IMG/VR virus record: IMGVR_UViG_3300032562_000003
Location: 124,001 to 188,000 of that record
DNA length: 64,000 nucleotides
Direction: 5' to 3' (one strand)
Part shown: piece after piece, positions 3,403 to 12,474 of the stretch
Layout of the letters: each line of letters begins with the position of its first letter
Numbering within the stretch: the first letter of the stretch is position 1
Notes under the pieces: generated by a model
What the model was told of the DNA's origin: nothing
Seen by the model: the letters and a program-made list of their open reading frames with translations, nothing else
Databases searched by the model: none
Translations under genes and position numbers: made by a program

Positions 3403-4599
3403 CTATTGGAATGTTAAATTTTGGACCGCAATTTCGCCAACGTAGTCAGCCGCATTACCAAACGAACTCGCGGTATTCGTCAATTCGATGTAGCCATATC
3501 TGGTCATGAATGAAACGACTGGCTCGAAAGTAGTCGGATCAAGAACGACGCCAGATGACATCAACGGAATGTATGGGCAGTAGAATGCTGCTGCGTCAGT
3601 TTCCGAAGAACCCTTGTAGCCTACGAGTACTGGCTGAGTGTCTGGAGCATAGCTGTTAACGAAAACGCGCATTGCACCGTTCAAAGTACCAACGAACTTA
3701 GTGTTAGTTGGGGCTTCGAAAGTACCTTCAGTAGTACGTGCGAAAGCTGAAGTAGTTGCTGACTGAAGAACAGTCAAGGAAGCTGGAGATACAACAGCCC
3801 AGTTACCTGCACCACGACGAGTGCGTTGTGCGATCAAGTTAGCAACACGGTTGATGAGTACTGCAAGAGCAGCGTGTTCGTCACCAACGTAAGTAGCTGT
3901 ACCTGATACAGTTGCTTGGTTGTAAGTATATTCAGTTGACGCAAGAGTTGCGAGTGAGAGCAAGATTTCTTGGTCGATTTCAGCAGTGATTTCTTGTGCA
4001 AGTGCTGCCATGATTTCTGCTTCAACGTCAATCCCGTGTTGTGATTGTGCGTCTTGTGCAGCTTCGAAAGTCCAGCGAGCTTGTAGCTTACGTGACTTTG
4101 CTTCAACAGCTTGTCTCAAGATTTGTACTGAGATTTGCTTTCCGCCATTACCTTCTAGAGAAGCAGTGTCGGCACCAGTGTAGTAGCTAGTGGAGGTTGC
4201 ATCATTAGGAACGCGAGAATAGGCTTGCGCGATCTTGAATGGTGAAAGTGCTTCTTCACCAGCAGTTACAGAAGTTGCTGCTGCTGAGTTGTCAGTCAAG
4301 CTATTTGCATAGCGAACACGAAGGGTGTGAATCTGACCGACTGGGCCGGTCATTGGTTGCACGCCAACAAGTTCGTTAGCAATAACAGTAGGCATAACAC
4401 GTCGAATTACTGGAAGAATAACGCGATTTAGAGTTGCGATATTACCAGCAGTTGTAGTGCCAGCTGAAGATTCAGCAAGAAGCTGCTTCTTCGTATTTTC
4501 AAACAATACGTTCATAGTTGAACGACGATTGCCTTTTAAGCCTTCAAGCAGGGCGCTTTTAGTTTCGTCCCAACGGCTTTCTAAGAGTACTTTTGACAT
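3403..4599 (-). CDS. gp23: major capsid protein (T4 gp23-like)
   Basis: LPVIRRVMPTVIANELVGVQPMTGPVGQIHTLR, AKSRKLQARWTFEAAQD, EITAEIDQEI, FYCPYIPL, TRYG; strong SD aggag. Confidence 0.97.
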   Translation of the reverse strand: MSKVLLESRWDETKSALLEGLKGNRRSTMNVLFENTKKQLLAESSAGTTTAGNIATLNRVILPVIRRVMPTVIANELVGVQPMTGPVGQIHTLRVRYANSLTDNSAAATSVTAGEEALSPFKIAQAYSRVPNDATSTSYYTGADTASLEGNGGKQISVQILRQAVEAKSRKLQARWTFEAAQDAQSQHGIDVEAEIMAALAQEITAEIDQEILLSLATLASTEYTYNQATVSGTATYVGDEHAALAVLINRVANLIAQRTRRGAGNWAVVSPASLTVLQSATTSAFARTTEGTFEAPTNTKFVGTLNGAMRVFVNSYAPDTQPVLVGYKGSSETDAAAFYCPYIPLMSSGVVLDPTTFEPVVSFMTRYGYIELTNTASSFGNAADYVGEIAVQNLTFQ

Positions 4600-4627: not shown

Positions 4628-5719
4628 TTAAAGCCCTGCCAGACGCTTGATGTCGATTACATTGTCTGTTTCAGACATATCGACTTCTTGTACTGTATTG
4701 GCAGTTTTATTACCAGTTGCTTCTACAATAACAGACTTAGAAGGCTTAGCTTCTGAACCTGTATTAAGAACGGCTGGCAAATACTTATCGAATGCGTTCT
4801 GTAGCTTTGCTGTTTGAACGCTTTCTAGTAAAGTCTTCATCACTTGAGCCTTTTCAGCGTTGAGACTTGACAATAGATTACCCATTACCTTCTCACGTTG
4901 ATTTGATTCTTTAATGATACGGACTTCACGATCCTTTGATTCTACTAACTTAGTTGCTTGTGCAAGCTTAGCTGTAGCTTCTGAGAGTTGACGGTCTTTG
5001 GCTGCAAGTGCCTTCATTACTTTACGATTTTCAGCCTTATCATTGAGATAAGTTACTGAGAATTCGCTAGCGAATGATTCGAAAATCTTGCGGCCGAAGC
5101 TGTTTTCTCTAGCAGATTTGATGTCTTCTTTAAGTTGTGATAGTTCACCCTTAAGTTGATTTCCAACAAGACCGCTAACCTTCTTAGCGCTTTCGGCAAT
5201 AAACTTTGCCTTGAGTGCTTCAAGTTGCTTGCGACCTTCTGCAACGAGCTTGACCTTAGCTTCTACTACTGCTTGTCTATCAACAGCGAATTCTTTGATT
5301 TCTCTTGATAGGGCGTGAACAATGAATTGTTCTAGCTTCTTTTGGTTTTCCATTTGAACCTTGCGATCAGCACGTAGTTCGCGGATTTCTTCGGCTAGCT
5401 TAGTAACCATGAAATCGTTGAACTTGGTTGCGTTTTCACGTAGTTTCAATTGAGACTTTACGCGGTCTTCGTTCATTGCTTGTCTTTCAGCGTTAAATTC
5501 TGCAATTTCTTCTGAAAGATTTTCTGTCATCATCTTATCTAGGGCTTCTACCATGACGTTACGATCATGCTCGTAACGTTGTGCAAATTCTTCATGAAGT
5601 TCTGCACGAACCTGAGCGCGAGCCTCAGTTAACTTAGATTCCCAGGCTTCGTTAAGTTCTCTGCCTACGTCTTCGTTAATGAGTCCACTTTCAAGTAATG
5701 GTTTGATAGCATCTAGCAT
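4628..5719 (-). CDS. gp22: prohead scaffold protein (gp22-like)
   Basis: Acidic coiled-coil protein between the protease and the capsid gene, with many L/I-x-E sites. Confidence 0.85.
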   Translation of the reverse strand: MLDAIKPLLESGLINEDVGRELNEAWESKLTEARAQVRAELHEEFAQRYEHDRNVMVEALDKMMTENLSEEIAEFNAERQAMNEDRVKSQLKLRENATKFNDFMVTKLAEEIRELRADRKVQMENQKKLEQFIVHALSREIKEFAVDRQAVVEAKVKLVAEGRKQLEALKAKFIAESAKKVSGLVGNQLKGELSQLKEDIKSARENSFGRKIFESFASEFSVTYLNDKAENRKVMKALAAKDRQLSEATAKLAQATKLVESKDREVRIIKESNQREKVMGNLLSSLNAEKAQVMKTLLESVQTAKLQNAFDKYLPAVLNTGSEAKPSKSVIVEATGNKTANTVQEVDMSETDNVIDIKRLAGL

Positions 5720-5735: not shown

Positions 5736-6374
5736 TTATAACTTTAGATCATTGATGAGGCGTTTTACTTCCTCAGCCAAGTATCTTTGGACTTGTTTGT
5801 TGCCTTGAGCGTCTTTAGCAATCTCTAATACTTTATGTCCGTACTTCATGTTCTGAAGACCTTCATAAATTGCCTTAGGATATGCATTCGGAGCACTCGG
5901 TTGAGCAACGATATCTACAGTGATTATTTCAAAGTCACTGACTCGACCATCCATATCGTTAACGTTGCCGCTACCTCTACTGGACACACCGAGCTTCACT
6001 CCTGATTCCAACATTGTTCTTACGAGTTGACCCATTGGAGTAGGAAGAATCTTTAGTTTACCATAACCGTTTGGTCCGTCCATATACATATGAGTGATCA
6101 TATGAGAGACACGGTCTAGGTTTATTTTTAGATCGTCTGGGTGATCGACTTCACCAAGCACCGAGTAACCCTCGTGTATTTGCTTGTTGAGAGTATCTAC
6201 CGCAGTTTCAATTTCGTTGACGGGGTAAATACGCTCATTTGCGTTCTTAATTCCGCCCATGATGAAAATACCTTTCATGTAGAGCGTCTTAAGATCGGTG
6301 CCCTCATCCTTGACTGATTCGACCACCATACTAGCGCGATCAAAGGTCAAATTTTCTCTTAAATATAGAGCCAT
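5736..6374 (-). CDS. gp21: prohead protease (gp21-like)
   Basis: GIKNANERIY, LGEVDHP, LDRVSH, GVSSRGSG, DIVAQPSAPNAY. Start set at ATG 6374 (MALYLRE) behind the SD aagaggtg. Confidence 0.95.
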   Translation of the reverse strand: MALYLRENLTFDRASMVVESVKDEGTDLKTLYMKGIFIMGGIKNANERIYPVNEIETAVDTLNKQIHEGYSVLGEVDHPDDLKINLDRVSHMITHMYMDGPNGYGKLKILPTPMGQLVRTMLESGVKLGVSSRGSGNVNDMDGRVSDFEIITVDIVAQPSAPNAYPKAIYEGLQNMKYGHKVLEIAKDAQGNKQVQRYLAEEVKRLINDLKL

Positions 6375-6514
6375 TATAACACCTCTTTTGGTTTGCATTC
6401 AGAAGCGGGTTGTGGACTCACATACCTACCGTAAAGTGGCACGTGAGTCCAACCATAGAGATTCGGGACTGATTTTACGTTTGCCCGATTCTCACTTCTG
6501 ATGTACAAAGCCAT
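6374..6514 (-). other. 46-codon uORF inside a structured leader of gp21, with a duplicated gp21 start
   Basis: ATG 6514 gives MALYIRSEN...PKEVL, and its stop overlaps the gp21 start as TAATG. The region pairs into a three-way junction (see findings). Confidence 0.55.
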
Positions 6515-6529
6515 TTGCTCTCAGATTCC

Positions 6530-7360
6530 TTATCGTGTTGGTCTACGAGCAGGAGCACGCTTGCGTGATTCTGCTACTGGGCTCTTGGTGTTTTGACCGT
6601 CATCACCGTGCTTTGGCTTAGGTGCTGCGCTCAAATCTTGTGACTTCTTTCCTGGTACGTTCTTGAACTGTCCTGCGCCCTTAAGATCCTTAGTAGGAGG
6701 AGCAGTACGACCCTTTTCATTACCGTCAGCAAACTTTACTGGCTTGCTGTCCATTCCAGCTTGTCCTGAATTGAAAGTAGTTGGGCTCTTAGTGTTCTGA
6801 CCATTGTCACCGTGAGTTACAGAAACCTTCTGAAGCTGAACTGCTTCCATCATGTCTTCTGCATCTTCTTCGTCTTCGTCGCCGAAATCTTCTTCGTCGC
6901 CGAAATCTTCTTCGTCTTCGTCGCCGAAATCTTCTTCGTCGCCGAAGTCTTCTTCTTCGCCTGAACCCATGATTTCTTCAAACTCTGCCATCAATTGGTC
7001 GAGCTTGTCTTCGATGCGAATTACTGCATCTTCAATTTCTTCGTGTTCTTCGCTTTCGTCGTGTTCTGCTTCTAGGTCGTGAGTGAAGTCTTCACCGTCT
7101 TCTTCAGCTTCATCATCAAATTCGATGTCGCTTTCGTCTTCTTCGGTAACACCTTCTTCTTCGGCGTTGATTTCGTCAAGTAGATCACCTACTTGTCCGC
7201 CCATACCTTCGTCCATATCATCGTCATCTTCTTCGGCCATAATTGACTCAAAGATTTCGCGTGACTTTTCTACTACGATTTCGTGAAAGAGTTCTGATGC
7301 TTGCTCGTGATCTTCATTGATTACGAGGTTGATCATTTGTTCGTATTTTCTGATATCCAT
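6530..7360 (-). CDS. acidic prohead core protein (gp67-like position)
   Basis: Very Asp/Glu-rich and located between portal and protease. Start moved to ATG 7360 (MDIRKYEQ) behind aggagac. Confidence 0.7.
   Translation of the reverse strand: MDIRKYEQMINLVINEDHEQASELFHEIVVEKSREIFESIMAEEDDDDMDEGMGGQVGDLLDEINAEEEGVTEEDESDIEFDDEAEEDGEDFTHDLEAEHDESEEHEEIEDAVIRIEDKLDQLMAEFEEIMGSGEEEDFGDEEDFGDEDEEDFGDEEDFGDEDEEDAEDMMEAVQLQKVSVTHGDNGQNTKSPTTFNSGQAGMDSKPVKFADGNEKGRTAPPTKDLKGAGQFKNVPGKKSQDLSAAPKPKHGDDGQNTKSPVAESRKRAPARRPTR
6864..6947. repeat. 42-bp tandem duplication encoding FGDEEDFGDEDEED
   Basis: Two 42-nt units (6864-6905, 6906-6947) differing at one base, each built from 18-nt sub-repeats. Confidence 0.85.
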
Positions 7361-7482
7361 TAAATTGTCTCCTGAATAGAAATGGCTTTGTATATTATAC
7401 TTATGCAGTGAGACAAAAAACACCGTATTAAGTAGTCTTTTTTGCGTTTTTGGCGGTGCTATACAAAATAAATATGGAGAAA

Positions 7483-7550
7483 GATAAATAAAGATGTAGT
7501 TCACGGTGCGCTAACACCCAACTACTCTAATGCTATAAGGAGCAATCAGC
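7483..7550 (+). promoter_or_regulatory. late promoter plus conserved two-hairpin leader, copy 1
   Basis: GATAAATA aagat GTAGTT cac GGTG cgctaa CACC c AACTAC tcta ATGCT ataaggagcaatc AGC-ATG. Confidence 0.85.
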
Positions 7551-8186
7551 ATGTGTATTTATTGCGGCACTACCAAATACCGTAGAATCTACGAACAACA
7601 CAACGGACCTATTCCAAAAGAAGAGAATGATCGATCATATGAAATCCATCACATAGACGGTGATCATTCAAATAATGACCCGATAAACTTGAAGTGTGTA
7701 ACTATTCAAGAACATTATGATATTCATTATTCTCAAGGTGACTACGGTGCTTGTTTTTTACTAGGTAAAAAACAAAAAGTTTCACCTGAAAAACTATCCG
7801 ATTTGAATAGGCTACAGAACTTAACCAGAATACAGAATAATACCCACAACTTGATCAAAAGGGCAGATGGTAGTTCACATGCGTCGGACAGGGTAAAAAA
7901 CGGAACTCATCATTTCTTAGACAAAGAAGCCGCAAGTCTCAGAGGAAAAAAACGAGTAGAAAACGGAACTCATCATTTCTTGAAACAAAACAGGTCACTT
8001 GCTTTTGTAGATAAAGTTAATCAACCTGTATATAAATGGAAACACGTAAAAACTGGTGAAATAGAAATTTTAACAGCAAAAGATTTCATGATCAAACATG
8101 ATTTATCAAAGTATCAAGGGAACATAAGTTGGTTAATAAGTGGTAAACATAAATCGGTTAAAGGTTGGATAGTAATACGAGATTGA
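7551..8186 (+). mobile_element. free-standing HNH homing endonuclease, antisense to the head operon
   Basis: EIHHIDGDHSNNDPINLKCVTIQEHYDIH HNH motif; C-terminal NUMOD1-like GNISWLISGKHKSVKGW. Confidence 0.85.
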
Positions 8187-8244
8187 CGAGTTTCTCCTAT
8201 ATAAATAGGACAAACGTCTCCTTCATATTCAGGTTTTACGATAA

Positions 8245-8478
8245 CTAGATGCTAGGTGCCCCGGCCGCAGCGTCAGGTTTAGCACCATACTGTTTACGTA
8301 ACTTTTCTAGGTACTGTTGCTTCTCGAATGTTCTTACATCCAGCATTCTACGAAGCTTTCGAATCTGTCTAAGCGTCAACTTAGTCTTGCGTGACGTTCT
8401 ATACACAGGTCTGCTGTTGTCAGAATTTACATCCTGTAGACCATTGACCGGCGGACTAAAAATATCTTCTAAAAGCAT
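8245..8478 (-). CDS. small basic protein downstream of portal (possible prohead core, gp68-like position)
   Basis: 77-aa ORF with SD gaggg and its own late promoter (8495-8502); RKTKLTLRQIRKLRR. Confidence 0.65.
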   Translation of the reverse strand: MLLEDIFSPPVNGLQDVNSDNSRPVYRTSRKTKLTLRQIRKLRRMLDVRTFEKQQYLEKLRKQYGAKPDAAAGAPSI

Positions 8479-8492
8479 GACACCCTCATCAA

Positions 8493-8517
8493 TATATTTA
8501 TCATTATGATAAATATA
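8493..8517. promoter_or_regulatory. back-to-back late promoters forming an 11-bp inverted repeat
   Basis: TATATTTATCA-tta-TGATAAATATA, with GATAAATA on the minus strand (8495-8502) and the plus strand (8508-8515). Confidence 0.75.
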
Positions 8518-8577
8518 AACGTAGTTCGCGGGTCAGCAAACCCCAACTACTCTAATGCTATCTTAGGAAACATCAGC
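8508..8577 (+). promoter_or_regulatory. late promoter plus conserved two-hairpin leader, copy 2
   Basis: GATAAATA taaac GTAGTT cgc GGGT cagcaa ACCC c AACTAC tcta ATGCT atcttaggaaacatc AGC-ATG. Confidence 0.85.
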
Positions 8578-9418
8578 ATGACTATTTATCTATACAAGAA
8601 AACCCATAACATAACTGGATTAAAATACTTAGGTAAAACCGCACAATCTAATCCATATAAGTATCCAGGATCCGGAAAAATGTAGAGGTCGCATATAAAA
8701 ACACATGGGTATGATGTTACTACTGAAATATTACGAGAGTGTCACTCTAAAGAAGAGGTAGCAGAATGGGGTTATACTACTCTAAACTGTGGAATATAGT
8801 AGACGAGCGGGATAAGAATGGGAAGAAAACGTGGGCTAATCTAAAGTTTGAAGAGGGCGACGGAGGTGCAACTGTTTTTGGTGACAGCCATCATTCTAAA
8901 ACTATTGAATTTAAAAATAGAATTGATCACGCATGGACTCCCGAAAAAAGAAAAAAACAAGGTGATCTGTCTCGATCACGATTTTCGCACATGTCTACTG
9001 AAGACAAAAAACATATAAGAAAAAAAGCAATCGACACTAGAACTAAAAATAACCCAGATTGGAGGAAAGACTTATCTGATAGAATGTTAGGGAAAACAAT
9101 CCTTCAAAATCTAAAGAAGTAATAGAAAAGATAGCAGAAAGTAAATCAAACTGGAATGACTCCTTTCGAGAATATGTAATCAGTAAAAATTCTGGAATTA
9201 ATCATTACAGAAACAACCCTAATTACAAATCAACTCAATTTGGAAAGGGGCACCCTAATTATAACCCCAATGTATACTCATTTAAAAATAAAAATACACT
9301 AGAAGAAGTTAGAATGACAGTGTTTGATTTTATAAAAACATACAACCTACATCAAGGAAATGTAAGTTTATTAATGTCTGGAAAAAGAAAATCTGTACGC
9401 GGGTGGATGTTATCTTAG
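8578..9418 (+). pseudogene. decayed GIY-YIG (Seg-like) homing endonuclease
   Basis: Starts MTIYLYKKTHNITGLKYLGKT, nearly identical to 17975..18682. TAG at 8683-8685 replaces the conserved Trp. Two 1-nt losses in G runs (8768-8771, 9090-9092). The third frame ends ...GNVSLLMSGKRKSVRGWMLS*. Confidence 0.85.
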
Positions 9419-12400
9419 AAGCCGCCGCCCGGAGTTGCTCCAGGTCCGCCCATTGCTGATGGTTCTGCTGCTACATCGCCGCCTGAAACTGGCCCAGCAG
9501 TTTCCGGTGCTTCACCTTCCTGTTCGGAATTCTCAATCTGATCCGCAGTATTCATATCAGCATCAAAGTCTCCGCTGGATACACCTATGTTTCTAAGATC
9601 AGCACCCTGTGGTTCGCTAGTGACTTCTTCTCTGTTTTCTTCTTCCCAGAGCTTTTCGTTCTTCTTGATTTCTTCTTCTGAAAGACCTAAGAATCTTTCA
9701 AGGTTGAAGCGCTTTGACATGTATGGAATAGCATCCATAGCAGAGAACACTGATACTCGTGCATTATCTAACTCACTCTGACGGTAGGCTGCAAAGTTTT
9801 GCGGAGGATTAAAAGTTAGTTGGAAAAGACTAGTATCAATATTGAAGCCTCTCCAACGCAAGAATAACTTAAACTCTTCATCCAGCTTCAAGCAGATATA
9901 ATTCTGAAGTCTTTCACAGTATTGATTGAATCTAAATTCTTGAATCATCGCTGTGCCGACACGACCATCGTTCATGGGTGTAGTATTGTCGTCGGGACCA
10001 GTTGGTAAGTATGAAGACGGAACACGAAGTCCACGGGCAAGACGATTATTGAAGTACTTCAAGTCATCGATTTCACCTAGATTTTGTCCGCCCGGCAGAA
10101 CTTCAACAGATGATCCACGTCCTTCTGCTGTTACAGGGAAGAAATAGTCTTCGTTCATTGAGTTCTTTACAAATATACCAGCGTCGATAGCAAACGTATG
10201 ATAATCATGCCATTGATGACGCCCATCAATAGTTATAGTTCCAGTGTCTCTGTTACTTACCTTTTCAATCTTTACAATTCTATGGTTAAAATTGTCAATT
10301 TCTTTTACAAAATGTTTCCAATTTTTATATCCAAATTTAGAAAGAAGTCTGTCTAACTTACTGTACCCAAACTTATTAAAGTCTATTTTACATTGTGCAT
10401 TTTTATAATCCAATGGTGATGAATTAGCATTCTTAACCAAACTCAATAAGGTGCTATCATTATCACACCACTCCAGTACCTTATTTTTATTTTTATTACC
10501 TTGCTTAACCTGTTCTGCTACTCGTTGTACCATATCAAATGTCAAGATCAGTGGTTGATTTTTAATTTTAACTCTCTTTTCACAATTTGCACGAACTTTT
10601 TCCAAACCAACTGGATTACGATCAAAGTACTCTTTGCGCACTTGTTGCATACTAGATTTATATTTAGCCGCAGTTATAGGATCGTTCTTTCTAGCCCATA
10701 CAGCTTTTTGTTGCGCTGCTCTAATGTTCCAAAGACCGATTAGACGTTCTTCTTCGGTCATATTTTCCCAATTTTCTTTTAGAGTGGCCGAAGTTTTAGA
10801 CGTTATCTGCTTTCTATATTCATCTGACATCGTTTCCCAAAATTCTTTTTTCTGTGCAGCATGATATAAAACATGATCTGTTTTGTTCATGAATACTAGG
10901 TTTTTGGGTTCGTTATTAAATCTATTGTTATCTTTATGATGAATAACTGTTCTAGGTGCCATTGCGTATTCAGTTAGATAATTAAATTCTTGGTGCTTTC
11001 CTAAATTTCTAAAGAAATCCCCGACCATCCGATGAGTCCAAATCCATTTTTTACTCTCATGGTCCCATACCTGCTGGTAATCATTGGTTTTTCCGCCTGA
11101 AATATTTTTATTTTGAGTATTGAACGCAATTAGACTATCATTTTCAGTTAAATGTTGTGCTTCTACAAAGCCTTTATCAAACACAGGTATTTTATGGTCT
11201 GGTGTACAAACTAATGTTTTGCCGTTATCAAAAGTAAGTTTAATTACTTCTGTGTTTTTTCTAGTAATGCCAGCCCAATTAATTACTCCAGGTACTACTC
11301 TACCGGTTACTGGATCGCAGCTATACGCCCAATTTTCTTTTCCAGCTTCAAATTCAGTGATTATTTCTTGTAAAGACAAGGTTCTTCCATCTAAAAGTGG
11401 AATTTTAGTTTCTAAATCCAAACATAAAGGGTTATAAGAGGCGTCCACAATCGACTGTCCACCGTACGGTGAGGGAATTCTACGCTGGTGAATTTCGTTC
11501 TTTACTCGCTCAACAAATGCCATTGCTAAGTGACTTGGCATGTTACCAACATCGATCTTAAACATTCTACGTTCAGGTGCACGCTGCACACGATAGATAA
11601 GAACCGCATCTTCTAGTAGTTCTTTTTGCTTATAGACCTTAAAGATGTTTTCCAGTATAGATTGACCAAAAGGCCAAAATCTATCTAATCCTTCAGTTAA
11701 GGACAAGTGTACAATATGCTTACTGTCTACTGCTGATTCACTCTGACCTAATGTAAAACGACTTCCAGTCGTATTATATGGCATTGCCGGAACAGTGTAC
11801 GGGGTGTTAGTTCCGCCGCCACTACCACCTAAACCAGTTGCTGGGTTCGCAGCAAAGTCAGTATTGGTTTTCTGTGCTACTGATAAGTTTTGTAGATTGA
11901 TATTGATGTCTTTGATGACATACTGTTCCGGCTTCTTGCCCTCAGATTCGTTGACGATAACCTTAATGACCTTAACCATATCAACCCAGTATAGCTTAAA
12001 GTTTTCTGGGTCACGAACAAATACTTGGTCACCATACTTGACAACGTTTCTGAAAATCTTAAACATTCTCACGTCGAATTCATTTAGCTTGCACCACTGT
12101 TGTAGCTGCTTACCTAGCAATTCTACTTCACGTGGCGTAGGTTCTCCTTTGAATTCAAACGCAAACGGTGTCTTGTTATGTTCATTTCGCTGTGTAGAGA
12201 ACTCTGCTATGATGTCCAAACAAGCGTTGATTTCAGCATCAACGTCCATCATTTCGTATTGATTGTATCGTTCGATTCTGTTGGGGTGACCAGTGTAGAC
12301 TTCCGGTAGTCTACTTTGATAGTTTTTGTATCCAAATTCAGTATTGTTCCAACCACCAGTTGGCATACCGTTTTGTCCAGGCGACCCATTCCATGCTCCG

Positions 12401-12474
12401 GCATTACTGCTCGCACCAGAGATAGGACTCGAAACACCACTCTTGTTTAGAAATTTCTTCTTGTATCCAGACAT
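9415..12474 (-). CDS. gp20: portal protein (gp20-like) containing an intein
   Basis: RYNQYEMMDVDAEINACLD, LLEDAVLIYRVQRAPERRMFKIDVGNMP, EDYFFP, VEVLPGGQNLGEIDDLKYF, RGLRVPSSYL. Confidence 0.96.
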   Translation of the reverse strand: MSGYKKKFLNKSGVSSPISGASSNAGAWNGSPGQNGMPTGGWNNTEFGYKNYQSRLPEVYTGHPNRIERYNQYEMMDVDAEINACLDIIAEFSTQRNEHNKTPFAFEFKGEPTPREVELLGKQLQQWCKLNEFDVRMFKIFRNVVKYGDQVFVRDPENFKLYWVDMVKVIKVIVNESEGKKPEQYVIKDININLQNLSVAQKTNTDFAANPATGLGGSGGGTNTPYTVPAMPYNTTGSRFTLGQSESAVDSKHIVHLSLTEGLDRFWPFGQSILENIFKVYKQKELLEDAVLIYRVQRAPERRMFKIDVGNMPSHLAMAFVERVKNEIHQRRIPSPYGGQSIVDASYNPLCLDLETKIPLLDGRTLSLQEIITEFEAGKENWAYSCDPVTGRVVPGVINWAGITRKNTEVIKLTFDNGKTLVCTPDHKIPVFDKGFVEAQHLTENDSLIAFNTQNKNISGGKTNDYQQVWDHESKKWIWTHRMVGDFFRNLGKHQEFNYLTEYAMAPRTVIHHKDNNRFNNEPKNLVFMNKTDHVLYHAAQKKEFWETMSDEYRKQITSKTSATLKENWENMTEEERLIGLWNIRAAQQKAVWARKNDPITAAKYKSSMQQVRKEYFDRNPVGLEKVRANCEKRVKIKNQPLILTFDMVQRVAEQVKQGNKNKNKVLEWCDNDSTLLSLVKNANSSPLDYKNAQCKIDFNKFGYSKLDRLLSKFGYKNWKHFVKEIDNFNHRIVKIEKVSNRDTGTITIDGRHQWHDYHTFAIDAGIFVKNSMNEDYFFPVTAEGRGSSVEVLPGGQNLGEIDDLKYFNNRLARGLRVPSSYLPTGPDDNTTPMNDGRVGTAMIQEFRFNQYCERLQNYICLKLDEEFKLFLRWRGFNIDTSLFQLTFNPPQNFAAYRQSELDNARVSVFSAMDAIPYMSKRFNLERFLGLSEEEIKKNEKLWEEENREEVTSEPQGADLRNIGVSSGDFDADMNTADQIENSEQEGEAPETAGPVSGGDVAAEPSAMGGPGATPGGGF
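10162..11424 (-). mobile_element. intein (421 aa, residues 351-771) with an HNH endonuclease domain
   Basis: Begins CLDLETKIPLLDG and ends HTFAIDAGIFVKN followed by Ser. Contains block B LVCTPDHKIPV and internal HNH VIHHKDNNRFNNEPKNL...H. Removing it restores contiguous YNPL|SMNEDYFFP. Confidence 0.92.

Follow-up and report, generated by a model that had tools for sequence, protein, structure and literature searches.

We analysed a stretch of 64,000 nucleotides (hereafter the window), corresponding to positions 124,001 to 188,000 of the IMG/VR record IMGVR_UViG_3300032562_000003 and part of an uncultured viral contig of 258,859 bp. In this window, the gene of the prohead core protease gp21 is preceded by an open reading frame (ORF) of 46 codons whose start resembles that of gp21. 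Comparisons with related loci indicate that this leader ORF is very probably the decayed form of a free-standing homing endonuclease gene (HEG) of the GIY-YIG type, i.e. of a cassette that took over the start of gp21 and supplied a recoded replacement for it. The RNA of the leader is predicted to fold into a three-way junction that the intact endonuclease genes also encode.

The gp21 start in the window and in its relatives

The stop codon of the gene upstream of gp21, which encodes an acidic protein of the prohead core, lies at 6532-6530 (TAA) and is followed by 15 nt and then by the ATG of the leader ORF (6514-6512). The gp21 protein begins MALYLREN. A preliminary description of this locus, made from the letters of the DNA, had reported the arrangement, and its coordinates were right at every position that we checked (the stop, the 15-nt gap, the ATG, the 46 codons and the TAATG overlap). 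The match of 13 out of 18 nt that it gave for the two MALY starts is borne out as well, and the stems that it quoted all lie where it had placed them. The features of the locus are listed below; an empty site is a gp21 start without an insertion.

5736-6374, minus strand: gp21, prohead core protease (Pfam Peptidase_S77, E 2.3e-25; tblastn matches to jumbo-phage proteases)
6351-6374, minus strand: right copy, gp21 codons 1-8 as apparently supplied by the cassette, with 5 synonymous changes relative to the empty-site sequence
6372-6376, minus strand: TAATG stop/start overlap, in which the leader stop shares its last A with the gp21 ATG (6374-6372)
6374-6514, minus strand: leader ORF of 46 codons (MALYIRSEN...KEVL), from ATG 6514-6512 to TAA 6376-6374
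6380-6385, minus strand: Shine-Dalgarno (SD) sequence GAGGTG of gp21, apparently supplied by the cassette, 5 nt 5' of the gp21 ATG
6386-6394, minus strand: putative deletion junction (AAACCAAAA), where the 5' part of the HEG (…GC AAx CCx…) joins its 3' end (…CAA CCx AAR GAG…)
6497-6514, minus strand: left copy, ancestral gp21 start and codons 2-6 (MALYIR), now the start of the leader ORF
6515-6529, minus strand: ancestral translation-initiation spacer of gp21, with SD-like GAGAG at 6522-6518, now serving the leader ORF

We fetched 80 viral contigs encoding gp21 (71-92% identity) and read the DNA 5' of each gp21 gene. The site is empty in about 75 of the 80: the core-gene stop is followed by ~15 nt (…GGAATCTGAGAGCAA) and by a single start, ATGGCTTTGTATCTCAGAGAAAAT…, which leads directly into gp21. 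The upstream copy in the window reads ATGGCTTTGTAC…, and its first 11 nt (ATGGCTTTGTA) are those of the gp21 start in these ~75 relatives. The spacer in front of it (6515-6529) is near-identical to the one that precedes the single start at empty sites. It follows that gp21 originally began at the upstream MALY copy. Five positions, each of them synonymous, set the downstream copy apart from the empty-site sequence.

Other relatives have an ORF at the same place. In the locus L005, an ORF of 266 aa runs from the ancestral ATG (MALYLSDD…) and gp21 restarts as MANSYLREN, while in L064 an ORF of 42 codons (MALYLSDN…) lies ahead of a restarted gp21. An intact endonuclease gene beginning with MALY is found exactly at the gp21 start in L005, L092, L110-L126 and L147. 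The preliminary description had proposed to look among relatives for a site with a single MALY start and for a full endonuclease gene at this position, and both occur. The site is polymorphic, with about 75 empty, at least 17 intact occupied and three remnant alleles, all at the gp21 start.

We gathered the endonuclease family with the ORF of L005 and then with a closer relative, L094 (= L110), as queries. This revealed at least 17 distinct loci with an ORF of 190-266 aa that starts MALY at the gp21 site. The alignment of 16 of these proteins displays the motif (F/Y)LYKWTH...KWYVGSRT, with a conserved E and N downstream (FNRHNGDG). The family matches PHROG 314, annotated as homing endonuclease, with E from 4e-17 to 2e-24; the protein of L005 has a NUMOD3 domain, and matches to Pfam SegE_GIY-YIG are all sub-threshold. 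A search of PDB sequences with the profile of the clade gave no match. The AlphaFold model of the HEG product has a predicted local distance difference test score of 79, with low confidence for residues 1-18, and the best folds in PDB are those of the I-TevI catalytic domain (1MK0/1LN0, probability 1.0), followed by the I-TevI DNA-binding domain and the GIY-YIG domain of UvrC. Judged by this predicted catalytic fold and by the motifs, the intact genes at the gp21 start are GIY-YIG homing endonucleases. Their relatives in cultured phages are seg-type only, with at most 33% identity. The HEGs found at other insertion sites begin 3-6 residues before the GIY motif.

The native gp21 start has a structure of its own. 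At empty sites, positions -20 to +27 around the ATG (e.g. 2981-3027 in L011, equivalent to 6488-6534 in the window) can form a small hairpin with the AUG in its loop, in which the SD region pairs with codons 4-6 (TCTGAGA/TCTCAGA, CTTG-AGA/TCTCAAG, GATAC/GTATC, TTAGG/CCTAA). Matched upstream and downstream strands form stabler duplexes than mismatched ones (-6.8 vs -5.1 kcal/mol, p 3e-7), and RNAalifold failed to recover this hairpin. The spacer 6515-6529 belongs to it. The HEG retains the hairpin and is inserted directly 3' of it.

The leader ORF matches both ends of the endonuclease gene

The similarity between the leader and the endonucleases is detectable in several ways. Residues 19-44 of the leader peptide align with residues 26-51 of the L005 protein (42% identity, E 4e-6, BLASTP), the profile of the HEG clade run on the genome matches 6383-6514 with E 3e-16, and a covariance model of the RNA (see below) scores 141 bits on the element of the window. 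At the DNA level, the leader is colinear with the HEGs of L094, L111 and L112 from the ATG to …GAA TGC AAA CC (…GGA TGC AAT CC in the HEG, encoding GCNP). Its last 20 nt (…CCAAAAGAGGTGTTATAATGG) are homologous to the 3' ends of the HEGs of L112 (…CTAAAAGAGGTCGCATAATGG) and L111 (…CCTAAGGAGATGGTGTAATGG), and the right copy has exactly the sequence with which gp21 begins behind the intact HEG of L094/L110. Since the leader matches both ends of the HEG and is followed by the gp21 start seen in L094, the best explanation is that the HEG lost ~0.45 kb of its interior, in frame, between short repeats of the form AAxCCxAA. A microhomology of this sequence is present at the junction when it is compared with both ends of the HEGs of L110, L111 and L112, and the frame is preserved. 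The leader is composed of ~41 N-terminal and ~5 C-terminal HEG codons.

The YIG motif of the window is mutated (GRYVSP instead of KWYVGS) and the region with the Arg, Glu and Asn residues is deleted. Hence, the leader peptide cannot be a nuclease. Scans of the 46-aa peptide itself against Pfam and PHROGs did not recognize it.

The element is present once in its own 259-kb genome, and identical copies occur in at least seven contigs and in lake-water metagenome runs from many studies. The contig L082 has the same scar with one difference, together with a cluster of 17 differences in gp21 codons ~9-58 adjoining the cassette (6200-6350 in the window). Its next ~1.8 kb are almost identical to the window, a pattern that resembles a short conversion tract at an endonuclease site.

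The cassette replaces the start that it takes over

We read the ends of the cassette in 17 alleles up to the HEG stop codon. The HEG takes over the gp21 ribosome-binding region, the ATG and the first 5-6 codons. At its other end, a visible SD (AAGGAG, AAAGAGG or GGAG) lies within the last HEG codons in most alleles, and the HEG stop overlaps or abuts the new gp21 ATG, again in most alleles (TAATG in L111-L116, L121 and L124; ATGA in L092; the overlaps of L064 and L092 are of the ATGA/GTGA type). The gp21 codons 2-5 are altered, synonymously or not, in nearly all HEG-bearing alleles, and are unaltered in L122. The left copy diverges after +15 to +18 in HEG-bearing alleles. The window has the same coupled-leader architecture as the intact alleles, with TAATG at 6376-6372 and GAGGTG at 6385-6380, and this SD is stronger than the one of L094. 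Such a design would suit a gene that sits in the 5' end of an essential gene and destroys its own target, and would presumably confer immunity.

These observations can be assembled into a mechanism. A HEG clade of related uncultured freshwater jumbo phages is inserted after codon 5-6 of gp21, has gp21's own ribosome-binding region and ATG for a start, and brings a replacement SD and ATG at its 3' end. In the lineage of the window, the in-frame deletion would have removed the catalytic core and left the 46-codon leader. The protease would then be made as MALYLREN... from the downstream ATG by means of the GAGGUG SD, probably aided by ribosomes that have translated the leader and stop at UAAUG, and the split and recoded target may keep the genome immune to related endonucleases. 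The hairpins may originally have limited or timed the translation of the endonuclease from the strong late start of gp21, and may now tune the flow of ribosomes into gp21. For annotation, this means that the start of gp21 would be the downstream ATG, and that short hypothetical ORFs of this kind are likely endonuclease scars.

A conserved RNA domain within the endonuclease coding region

RNAfold of positions 6360-6530 (minus strand) reproduced the three-way junction drawn in the preliminary description, at -60.9 kcal/mol. None of 200 dinucleotide shuffles was as stable (mean -39.0 +/- 4.1, z -5.3). The strands of the closing helix were assigned from the fold of the 126-nt element.

6494-6513, minus strand: closing helix, 5' strand (UGG, UUUGUA, UCAGAAGU), which takes in part of the ancestral start codon
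6458-6493, minus strand: arm 2 hairpin (GAGA.UCGGG with CCCGA.UCUC), coding for the variable N-terminal extension of the HEG
6408-6454, minus strand: arm 1 hairpin of 20 bp and one bulge, across the former GIY...YIG coding segment
6389-6406, minus strand: closing helix, 3' strand (GCUUCUGA, UGCAAA, CCA), within the former HEG codons for A-x-G-C-N-P

In the closing stem, CAGAAG (6500-6495) pairs with CTTCTG (6405-6400). Arm 1 joins TGGACTCAC (6451-6443) to GTGAGTCCA (6421-6413), and arm 2 joins GAGAATCGGG (6493-6484) to CCCGAATCTC (6467-6458) with one A.A mismatch. The outer pairings of the old and new start regions shift with the sequence context that is folded.

We then searched for this structure in the intact HEGs. 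A hairpin is present at the position of arm 2 in every member of the clade, with differing sequences, for example AAACGGG/CCCGTTT in L112, GAGAAACGC/GCGTTTCTC in L121 and ACGCTTGAGTG/CACTCAAGCGT in L116. It lies within the variable N-terminal extension, which is exclusive to the gp21-site clade. Arm 1 pairs the codons of H-V-P with those of W-Y-V and covaries at synonymous sites, with swaps between GC and AU (CACGTACC/GGTACGTG vs CACATACC/GGTATGTG, RNAalifold). It is rich in U.G and poor in A.C pairs, which points to the sense-strand RNA. On plain MAFFT alignments, RNAalifold recovered only arm 1, because the registers of the hairpins shift between sequences. We therefore relied on synonymous recodings, on the energies of matched and mismatched duplexes and on an alignment made with a covariance model. 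Compared with 300 synonymous recodings of each protein, arm 1 is stabler in 14 of 15 HEGs (p <= 0.033), and so is arm 2 (14 of 15, p <= 0.03). HEGs inserted elsewhere show little excess stability of arm 1 (mean z -0.9), so the domain belongs to the gp21-site clade and is not a general property of GIY-YIG codons.

The covariance model built from the three-way junction of the window detects the domain in all members of the clade, with 33-141 bits. In the resulting alignment, which was fitted to the model and is biased towards structure, 72% of the cells are paired vs 64.5% in shuffles, and 122 cells have double changes vs 59 +/- 6 in shuffles, a value that none of 500 shuffles reached; slid controls are 29-44% paired. 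Helices 3-4 (arm 2) are 84% paired in this alignment, with double changes at 9 of 9 pairs, and helices 1-2 (the closing helix) are 64-75% paired, with 12 such pairs. These comparisons of sequences indicate that the three-way junction is a conserved 5' RNA domain of the HEG clade and not something new at this locus. The preliminary description had made conservation in relatives a point on which its structure could fail, and the structure is conserved in the HEG clade. The analysis thus brings to light a conserved RNA domain within the coding sequence of an endonuclease.

Does the remnant structure still act on gp21?

Although 41-49 of its 126 nt differ from those of the nearest intact relatives, the element of the window has a folding energy of -55.5 kcal/mol. 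Copies of each relative with as many mutations reach on average -31 to -32 kcal/mol, none of 400 per relative attains the value of the window, and the intact relatives themselves fold at -44 to -47 kcal/mol. Among 20 related elements the fold of the window is the stablest, with a z of -7.8 vs -2.3 to -3.3 for the nearest intact HEGs. The changes that destroyed the YVGS motif (GGT to AGT, TCA to CCA) turn two wobble pairs into Watson-Crick pairs. The TGKW segment is frameshifted in the window, and the changes re-form the inner helix. Arm 1 persists in the window in spite of the loss of the TGKW and YVGS motifs. All this is suggestive, but not proof, of a structure still under selection in the remnant.

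The two other remnants add to this picture. L064 is a remnant of an L005-type HEG that has lost all coding similarity, and it has three perfect hairpins of 5-10 bp, one of them with a compensatory change (GATTCGG/CCGAATC to GATAATTTGG/CCAAATTATC). The third, L196 (Ga0194048_10023081, positions 2411-2681), lies at the end of a contig and is very recent: an L112-type HEG was shortened by an in-frame internal deletion from 207 to ~95 aa. The three independent remnants are all open from the hijacked ATG to the native stop/restart. We estimated at ~0.06 the chance that L064, which is AT-rich, stays open, and at ~0.04 the chance of three in-frame deletions. These open frames are compatible with a requirement that ribosomes traverse the leader up to the point where gp21 restarts.

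If the structure acts on gp21, it probably does not do so by hiding the start. The predicted cost of opening positions -13 to +13 around the hijacked start is 9.5 +/- 1.6 kcal/mol for HEG and remnant alleles and 9.5 +/- 1.8 kcal/mol for empty sites (Mann-Whitney p 0.93). One reason for this is that the native gp21 start already lies in a small conserved hairpin, which the HEG retained. Simple masking of the ribosome-binding site, of the kind described for I-TevI, segB and mobE, is therefore unsupported. The preliminary description had put forward the scar of a mobile element with a recoded start, an attenuator of the protease, or both. The scar is upheld by the empty and occupied sites and by the match of the leader to both HEG ends, whereas the attenuator finds no support in opening energies equal to those of empty sites. 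The conserved arms are downstream of the initiation footprint, within the coding region, and it is possible that they slow ribosomes or affect the processing or the stability of the RNA.

A regulatory role compatible with an origin as a scar can nevertheless be formulated: once the endonuclease was dead, selection would have retained the junction and the open leader because they control the translation of the protease in cis. Ribosomes entering at the old start would unwind the junction, terminate at UAAUG and begin again on gp21. The stability of the window fold among the 20 elements, the improved pairing brought by the very changes that destroyed the GIY-YIG motif, the hairpins of L064 with their compensatory changes in spite of lost coding similarity, the frames of the three remnants that remain open to the overlapping stop/start, and a SD (GAGGTG) stronger than that of L094 all speak for it. 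On the other hand, just three remnants are known and L196 is very recent, nothing stands out in the accessibility predicted for the old and new start regions, and the outer pairings vary with the folded context. We regard this regulatory role as possible but somewhat doubtful. The same tentative standing applies to a broader scenario in which a selfish GIY-YIG clade parasitises the start of an essential late gene by way of an RNA domain maintained by selection, and the phage later exapts this domain and the open leader for the expression of its protease.

Several points, besides the opening energies, weigh against our interpretation of the locus. No direct ancestor was found in which the flanks of the window enclose an intact HEG: a degenerate-pattern search of viral and metagenome collections for a near-identical ancestor retrieved nothing beyond this remnant, HEGs already known and one new remnant. 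Consequently, the deletion is deduced from relatives that are 33-39% different in the 5' domain. The structural conservation in the window could partly date from the time when the HEG was alive and may predate its inactivation, and the pair counts carry the bias of an alignment fitted to the model. Finally, two metatranscriptome runs have exact contigs that cover 6130-6349 in gp21 and 6587-6737 in the core gene, beside the element, and none over 6374-6514.

Other explanations for the structured leader

A miniature transposon in the gp21 start (a miniature inverted-repeat transposable element or a hairpin element of the IS200/605 type) would account for a length of ~120-140 nt, for inverted repeats and for a short target duplication. 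The element, however, has a single copy in a genome of 259 kb, each copy found in the public collections of viruses and metagenomes occupies this one locus, and its sequence is colinear with both HEG ends. We consider this explanation very improbable.

Even less credit can be given to a small self-splicing intron or self-cleaving ribozyme within gp21. Phage HEGs often reside in group I introns, and the window does have a three-way junction at an insertion site inside a gene. However, 141 nt are too few for a group I core, and no covariance model of Rfam matches: the window region has no match at E <= 10 near the gathering score (the best reaches 20 bits for a cut-off of 52), and five related loci have none at E <= 0.1. 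ARAGORN detected no tRNA or tmRNA. The strands of the junction are coding motifs (LYKW, SRTA) and lack the sequences of a hammerhead core, and splicing is unneeded when the duplicated target has its own start. We saw no splice or deletion joint at the element in DNA or RNA contigs, with the RNA contigs adjoining the element.

The preliminary description had also mentioned, as a long shot, a bypass of the gene 60 type, i.e. a ribosomal hop that would take off at AGA 6499-6497, land on the matching AGA of the downstream MALY start and yield one protein. Matching AGA codons with a strong structure between them invite this reading, but it can be rejected as extremely unlikely. The take-off AGA is followed by AGU and not by a stop, and the downstream copy, which comes with an SD and an ATG of its own, repeats codons 1-5 (the hop would thus duplicate nothing useful). 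In relatives, an endonuclease gene of 190-266 codons, homologous to the leader, fills the supposed gap. The hop, splicing and the transposon were rejected on the gp21 start of its own, the missing covariance-model match and the single fixed locus, respectively.

Genomic context and neighbouring endonucleases

The head module around gp21 is of the T4 type, and all genes at the element are on the minus strand.

3403-4599, minus strand: major capsid protein, T4-type head module
4628-5719, minus strand: scaffold, T4-type head module
6530-7360, minus strand: acidic prohead-core gene, stop TAA at 6532-6530, likely start MDIRKYEQ at 7360 (from the ORF list)
9415-12474, minus strand: portal gene with intein, head module

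The acidic core gene is 5' of gp21 in all relatives too. The closest cultured relatives of gp21 are jumbo phages, with at most 60% identity (Sinorhizobium Phosso and Pseudomonas PA5oct, tblastn), and searches of cultured phages at the DNA level with megablast and blastn gave no useful match. Between 6800 and 7230 (minus strand), the acidic core protein has imperfect tandem repeats (EEDFGDE…). In metagenome contigs, this region has a raised depth and one length variant that skips 168 nt (7060-7229).

Other endonucleases are found in the vicinity. The portal gene (Portal_T4, E 1.5e-94; product of 1018 aa) contains an intein (Intein_splicing, E 5e-9) that holds an HNH domain (HNH_3, E 1.5e-4). 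Between the core gene and a small upstream gene, on the opposite strand, lies an HNH endonuclease gene of 211 aa (7551-8186, plus strand; Pfam HNH_3, E 5e-13). The block of ~820 bp that includes it (7452-8273) is precisely missing in the near-identical contigs L200 (99.6% identical) and L082. It is therefore a second free-standing endonuclease, recently gained or lost, ~1 kb from the scar. Further on, at 8506-9418 (plus strand), three short ORFs (59, 118 and 34 aa) resemble fragments of a broken seg-type GIY-YIG gene (…IYLYKKTHNITGLKYLGKT…), of which an intact paralogue of 235 aa is present in the same genome ~9 kb away (window ~17975-18682, minus strand). One more distant GIY-YIG gene, of 228 aa, is at ~100.3-101.0 kb of the genome.

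Comparison with known systems

Free-standing phage HEGs, their decay and RNA structures at their 5' ends are already known. As far as the literature we searched tells, an in-frame takeover of a start with a built-in replacement start has not been described for phage endonucleases, and a three-way-junction RNA common to a whole clade and retained in its remnants also appears to be new. The site matters for a further reason: one essential capsid-maturation gene presents empty, intact and three independently decayed alleles, which makes the HEG life cycle readable in uncultured jumbo phages.

The closest parallel is with the seg-type GIY-YIG HEGs of T4-like phages, which likewise pair a GIY-YIG nuclease with a DNA-binding part at the C-terminus (NUMOD3 in L005). 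As in intronless homing, the genes are inserted in or between conserved genes of T4-type phages, are polymorphic for presence and absence among close relatives, apparently alter the target of the carrier and adjoin a patch of divergence (PMC2988022). The T4 seg genes, however, are located between genes and have their own starts or overlap the upstream ORF, whereas the HEGs of the gp21-site clade continue, in frame, from the first 5-6 codons of a late gene that is essential. They appropriate the ribosome-binding region and the ATG of this gene and return a SD and an ATG, with the first codons recoded in most alleles.

In T4, the insert associated with mobA and gene 60 disrupts an endonuclease target. 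The likeness with mobA and the 50-nt bypass insert of gene 60 is that a mobile cassette places a structured RNA within the coding region of an essential gene, at its 5' end or internally (cf. bioRxiv 10.1101/2022.08.31.505936). The difference is that gene 60 needs ribosome hopping, while gp21 simply begins anew, with a SD of its own and an ATG that overlaps the preceding stop, and the features of a bypass are absent.

RNA hairpins restrict the translation of I-TevI, I-TevII, I-TevIII, segB and the mobE of Aeh1 (PMC2988022). The gp21-site clade resembles these phage HEGs in that the 5' end of its message has a conserved RNA secondary structure. In those genes the hairpins sequester the ribosome-binding site, whereas the arms at the gp21 site are at +19 to +107 in the coding region, with a long-range closing helix, and the predicted opening energy of the start is not raised.

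At the gp21 site, empty, intact and decayed alleles coexist, and the decayed allele appears to keep a disrupted target. This resembles the HEG life cycle of invasion, decay and loss that Goddard and Burt are said to have modelled. It departs from that model in that the three decayed alleles are all in frame, with an open leader and an intact RNA domain. Such in-frame decay suggests a constraint from the host gene's need for translation.

In organelles, ORFs of group I introns are fused in frame to the upstream exon, and the endonuclease is read from the start of the host gene (PMC7487136 for context). The endonuclease ORF at gp21 would likewise be read from the start of its host gene, but there is no intron or splicing, and it is a duplicated start that restores the host gene.

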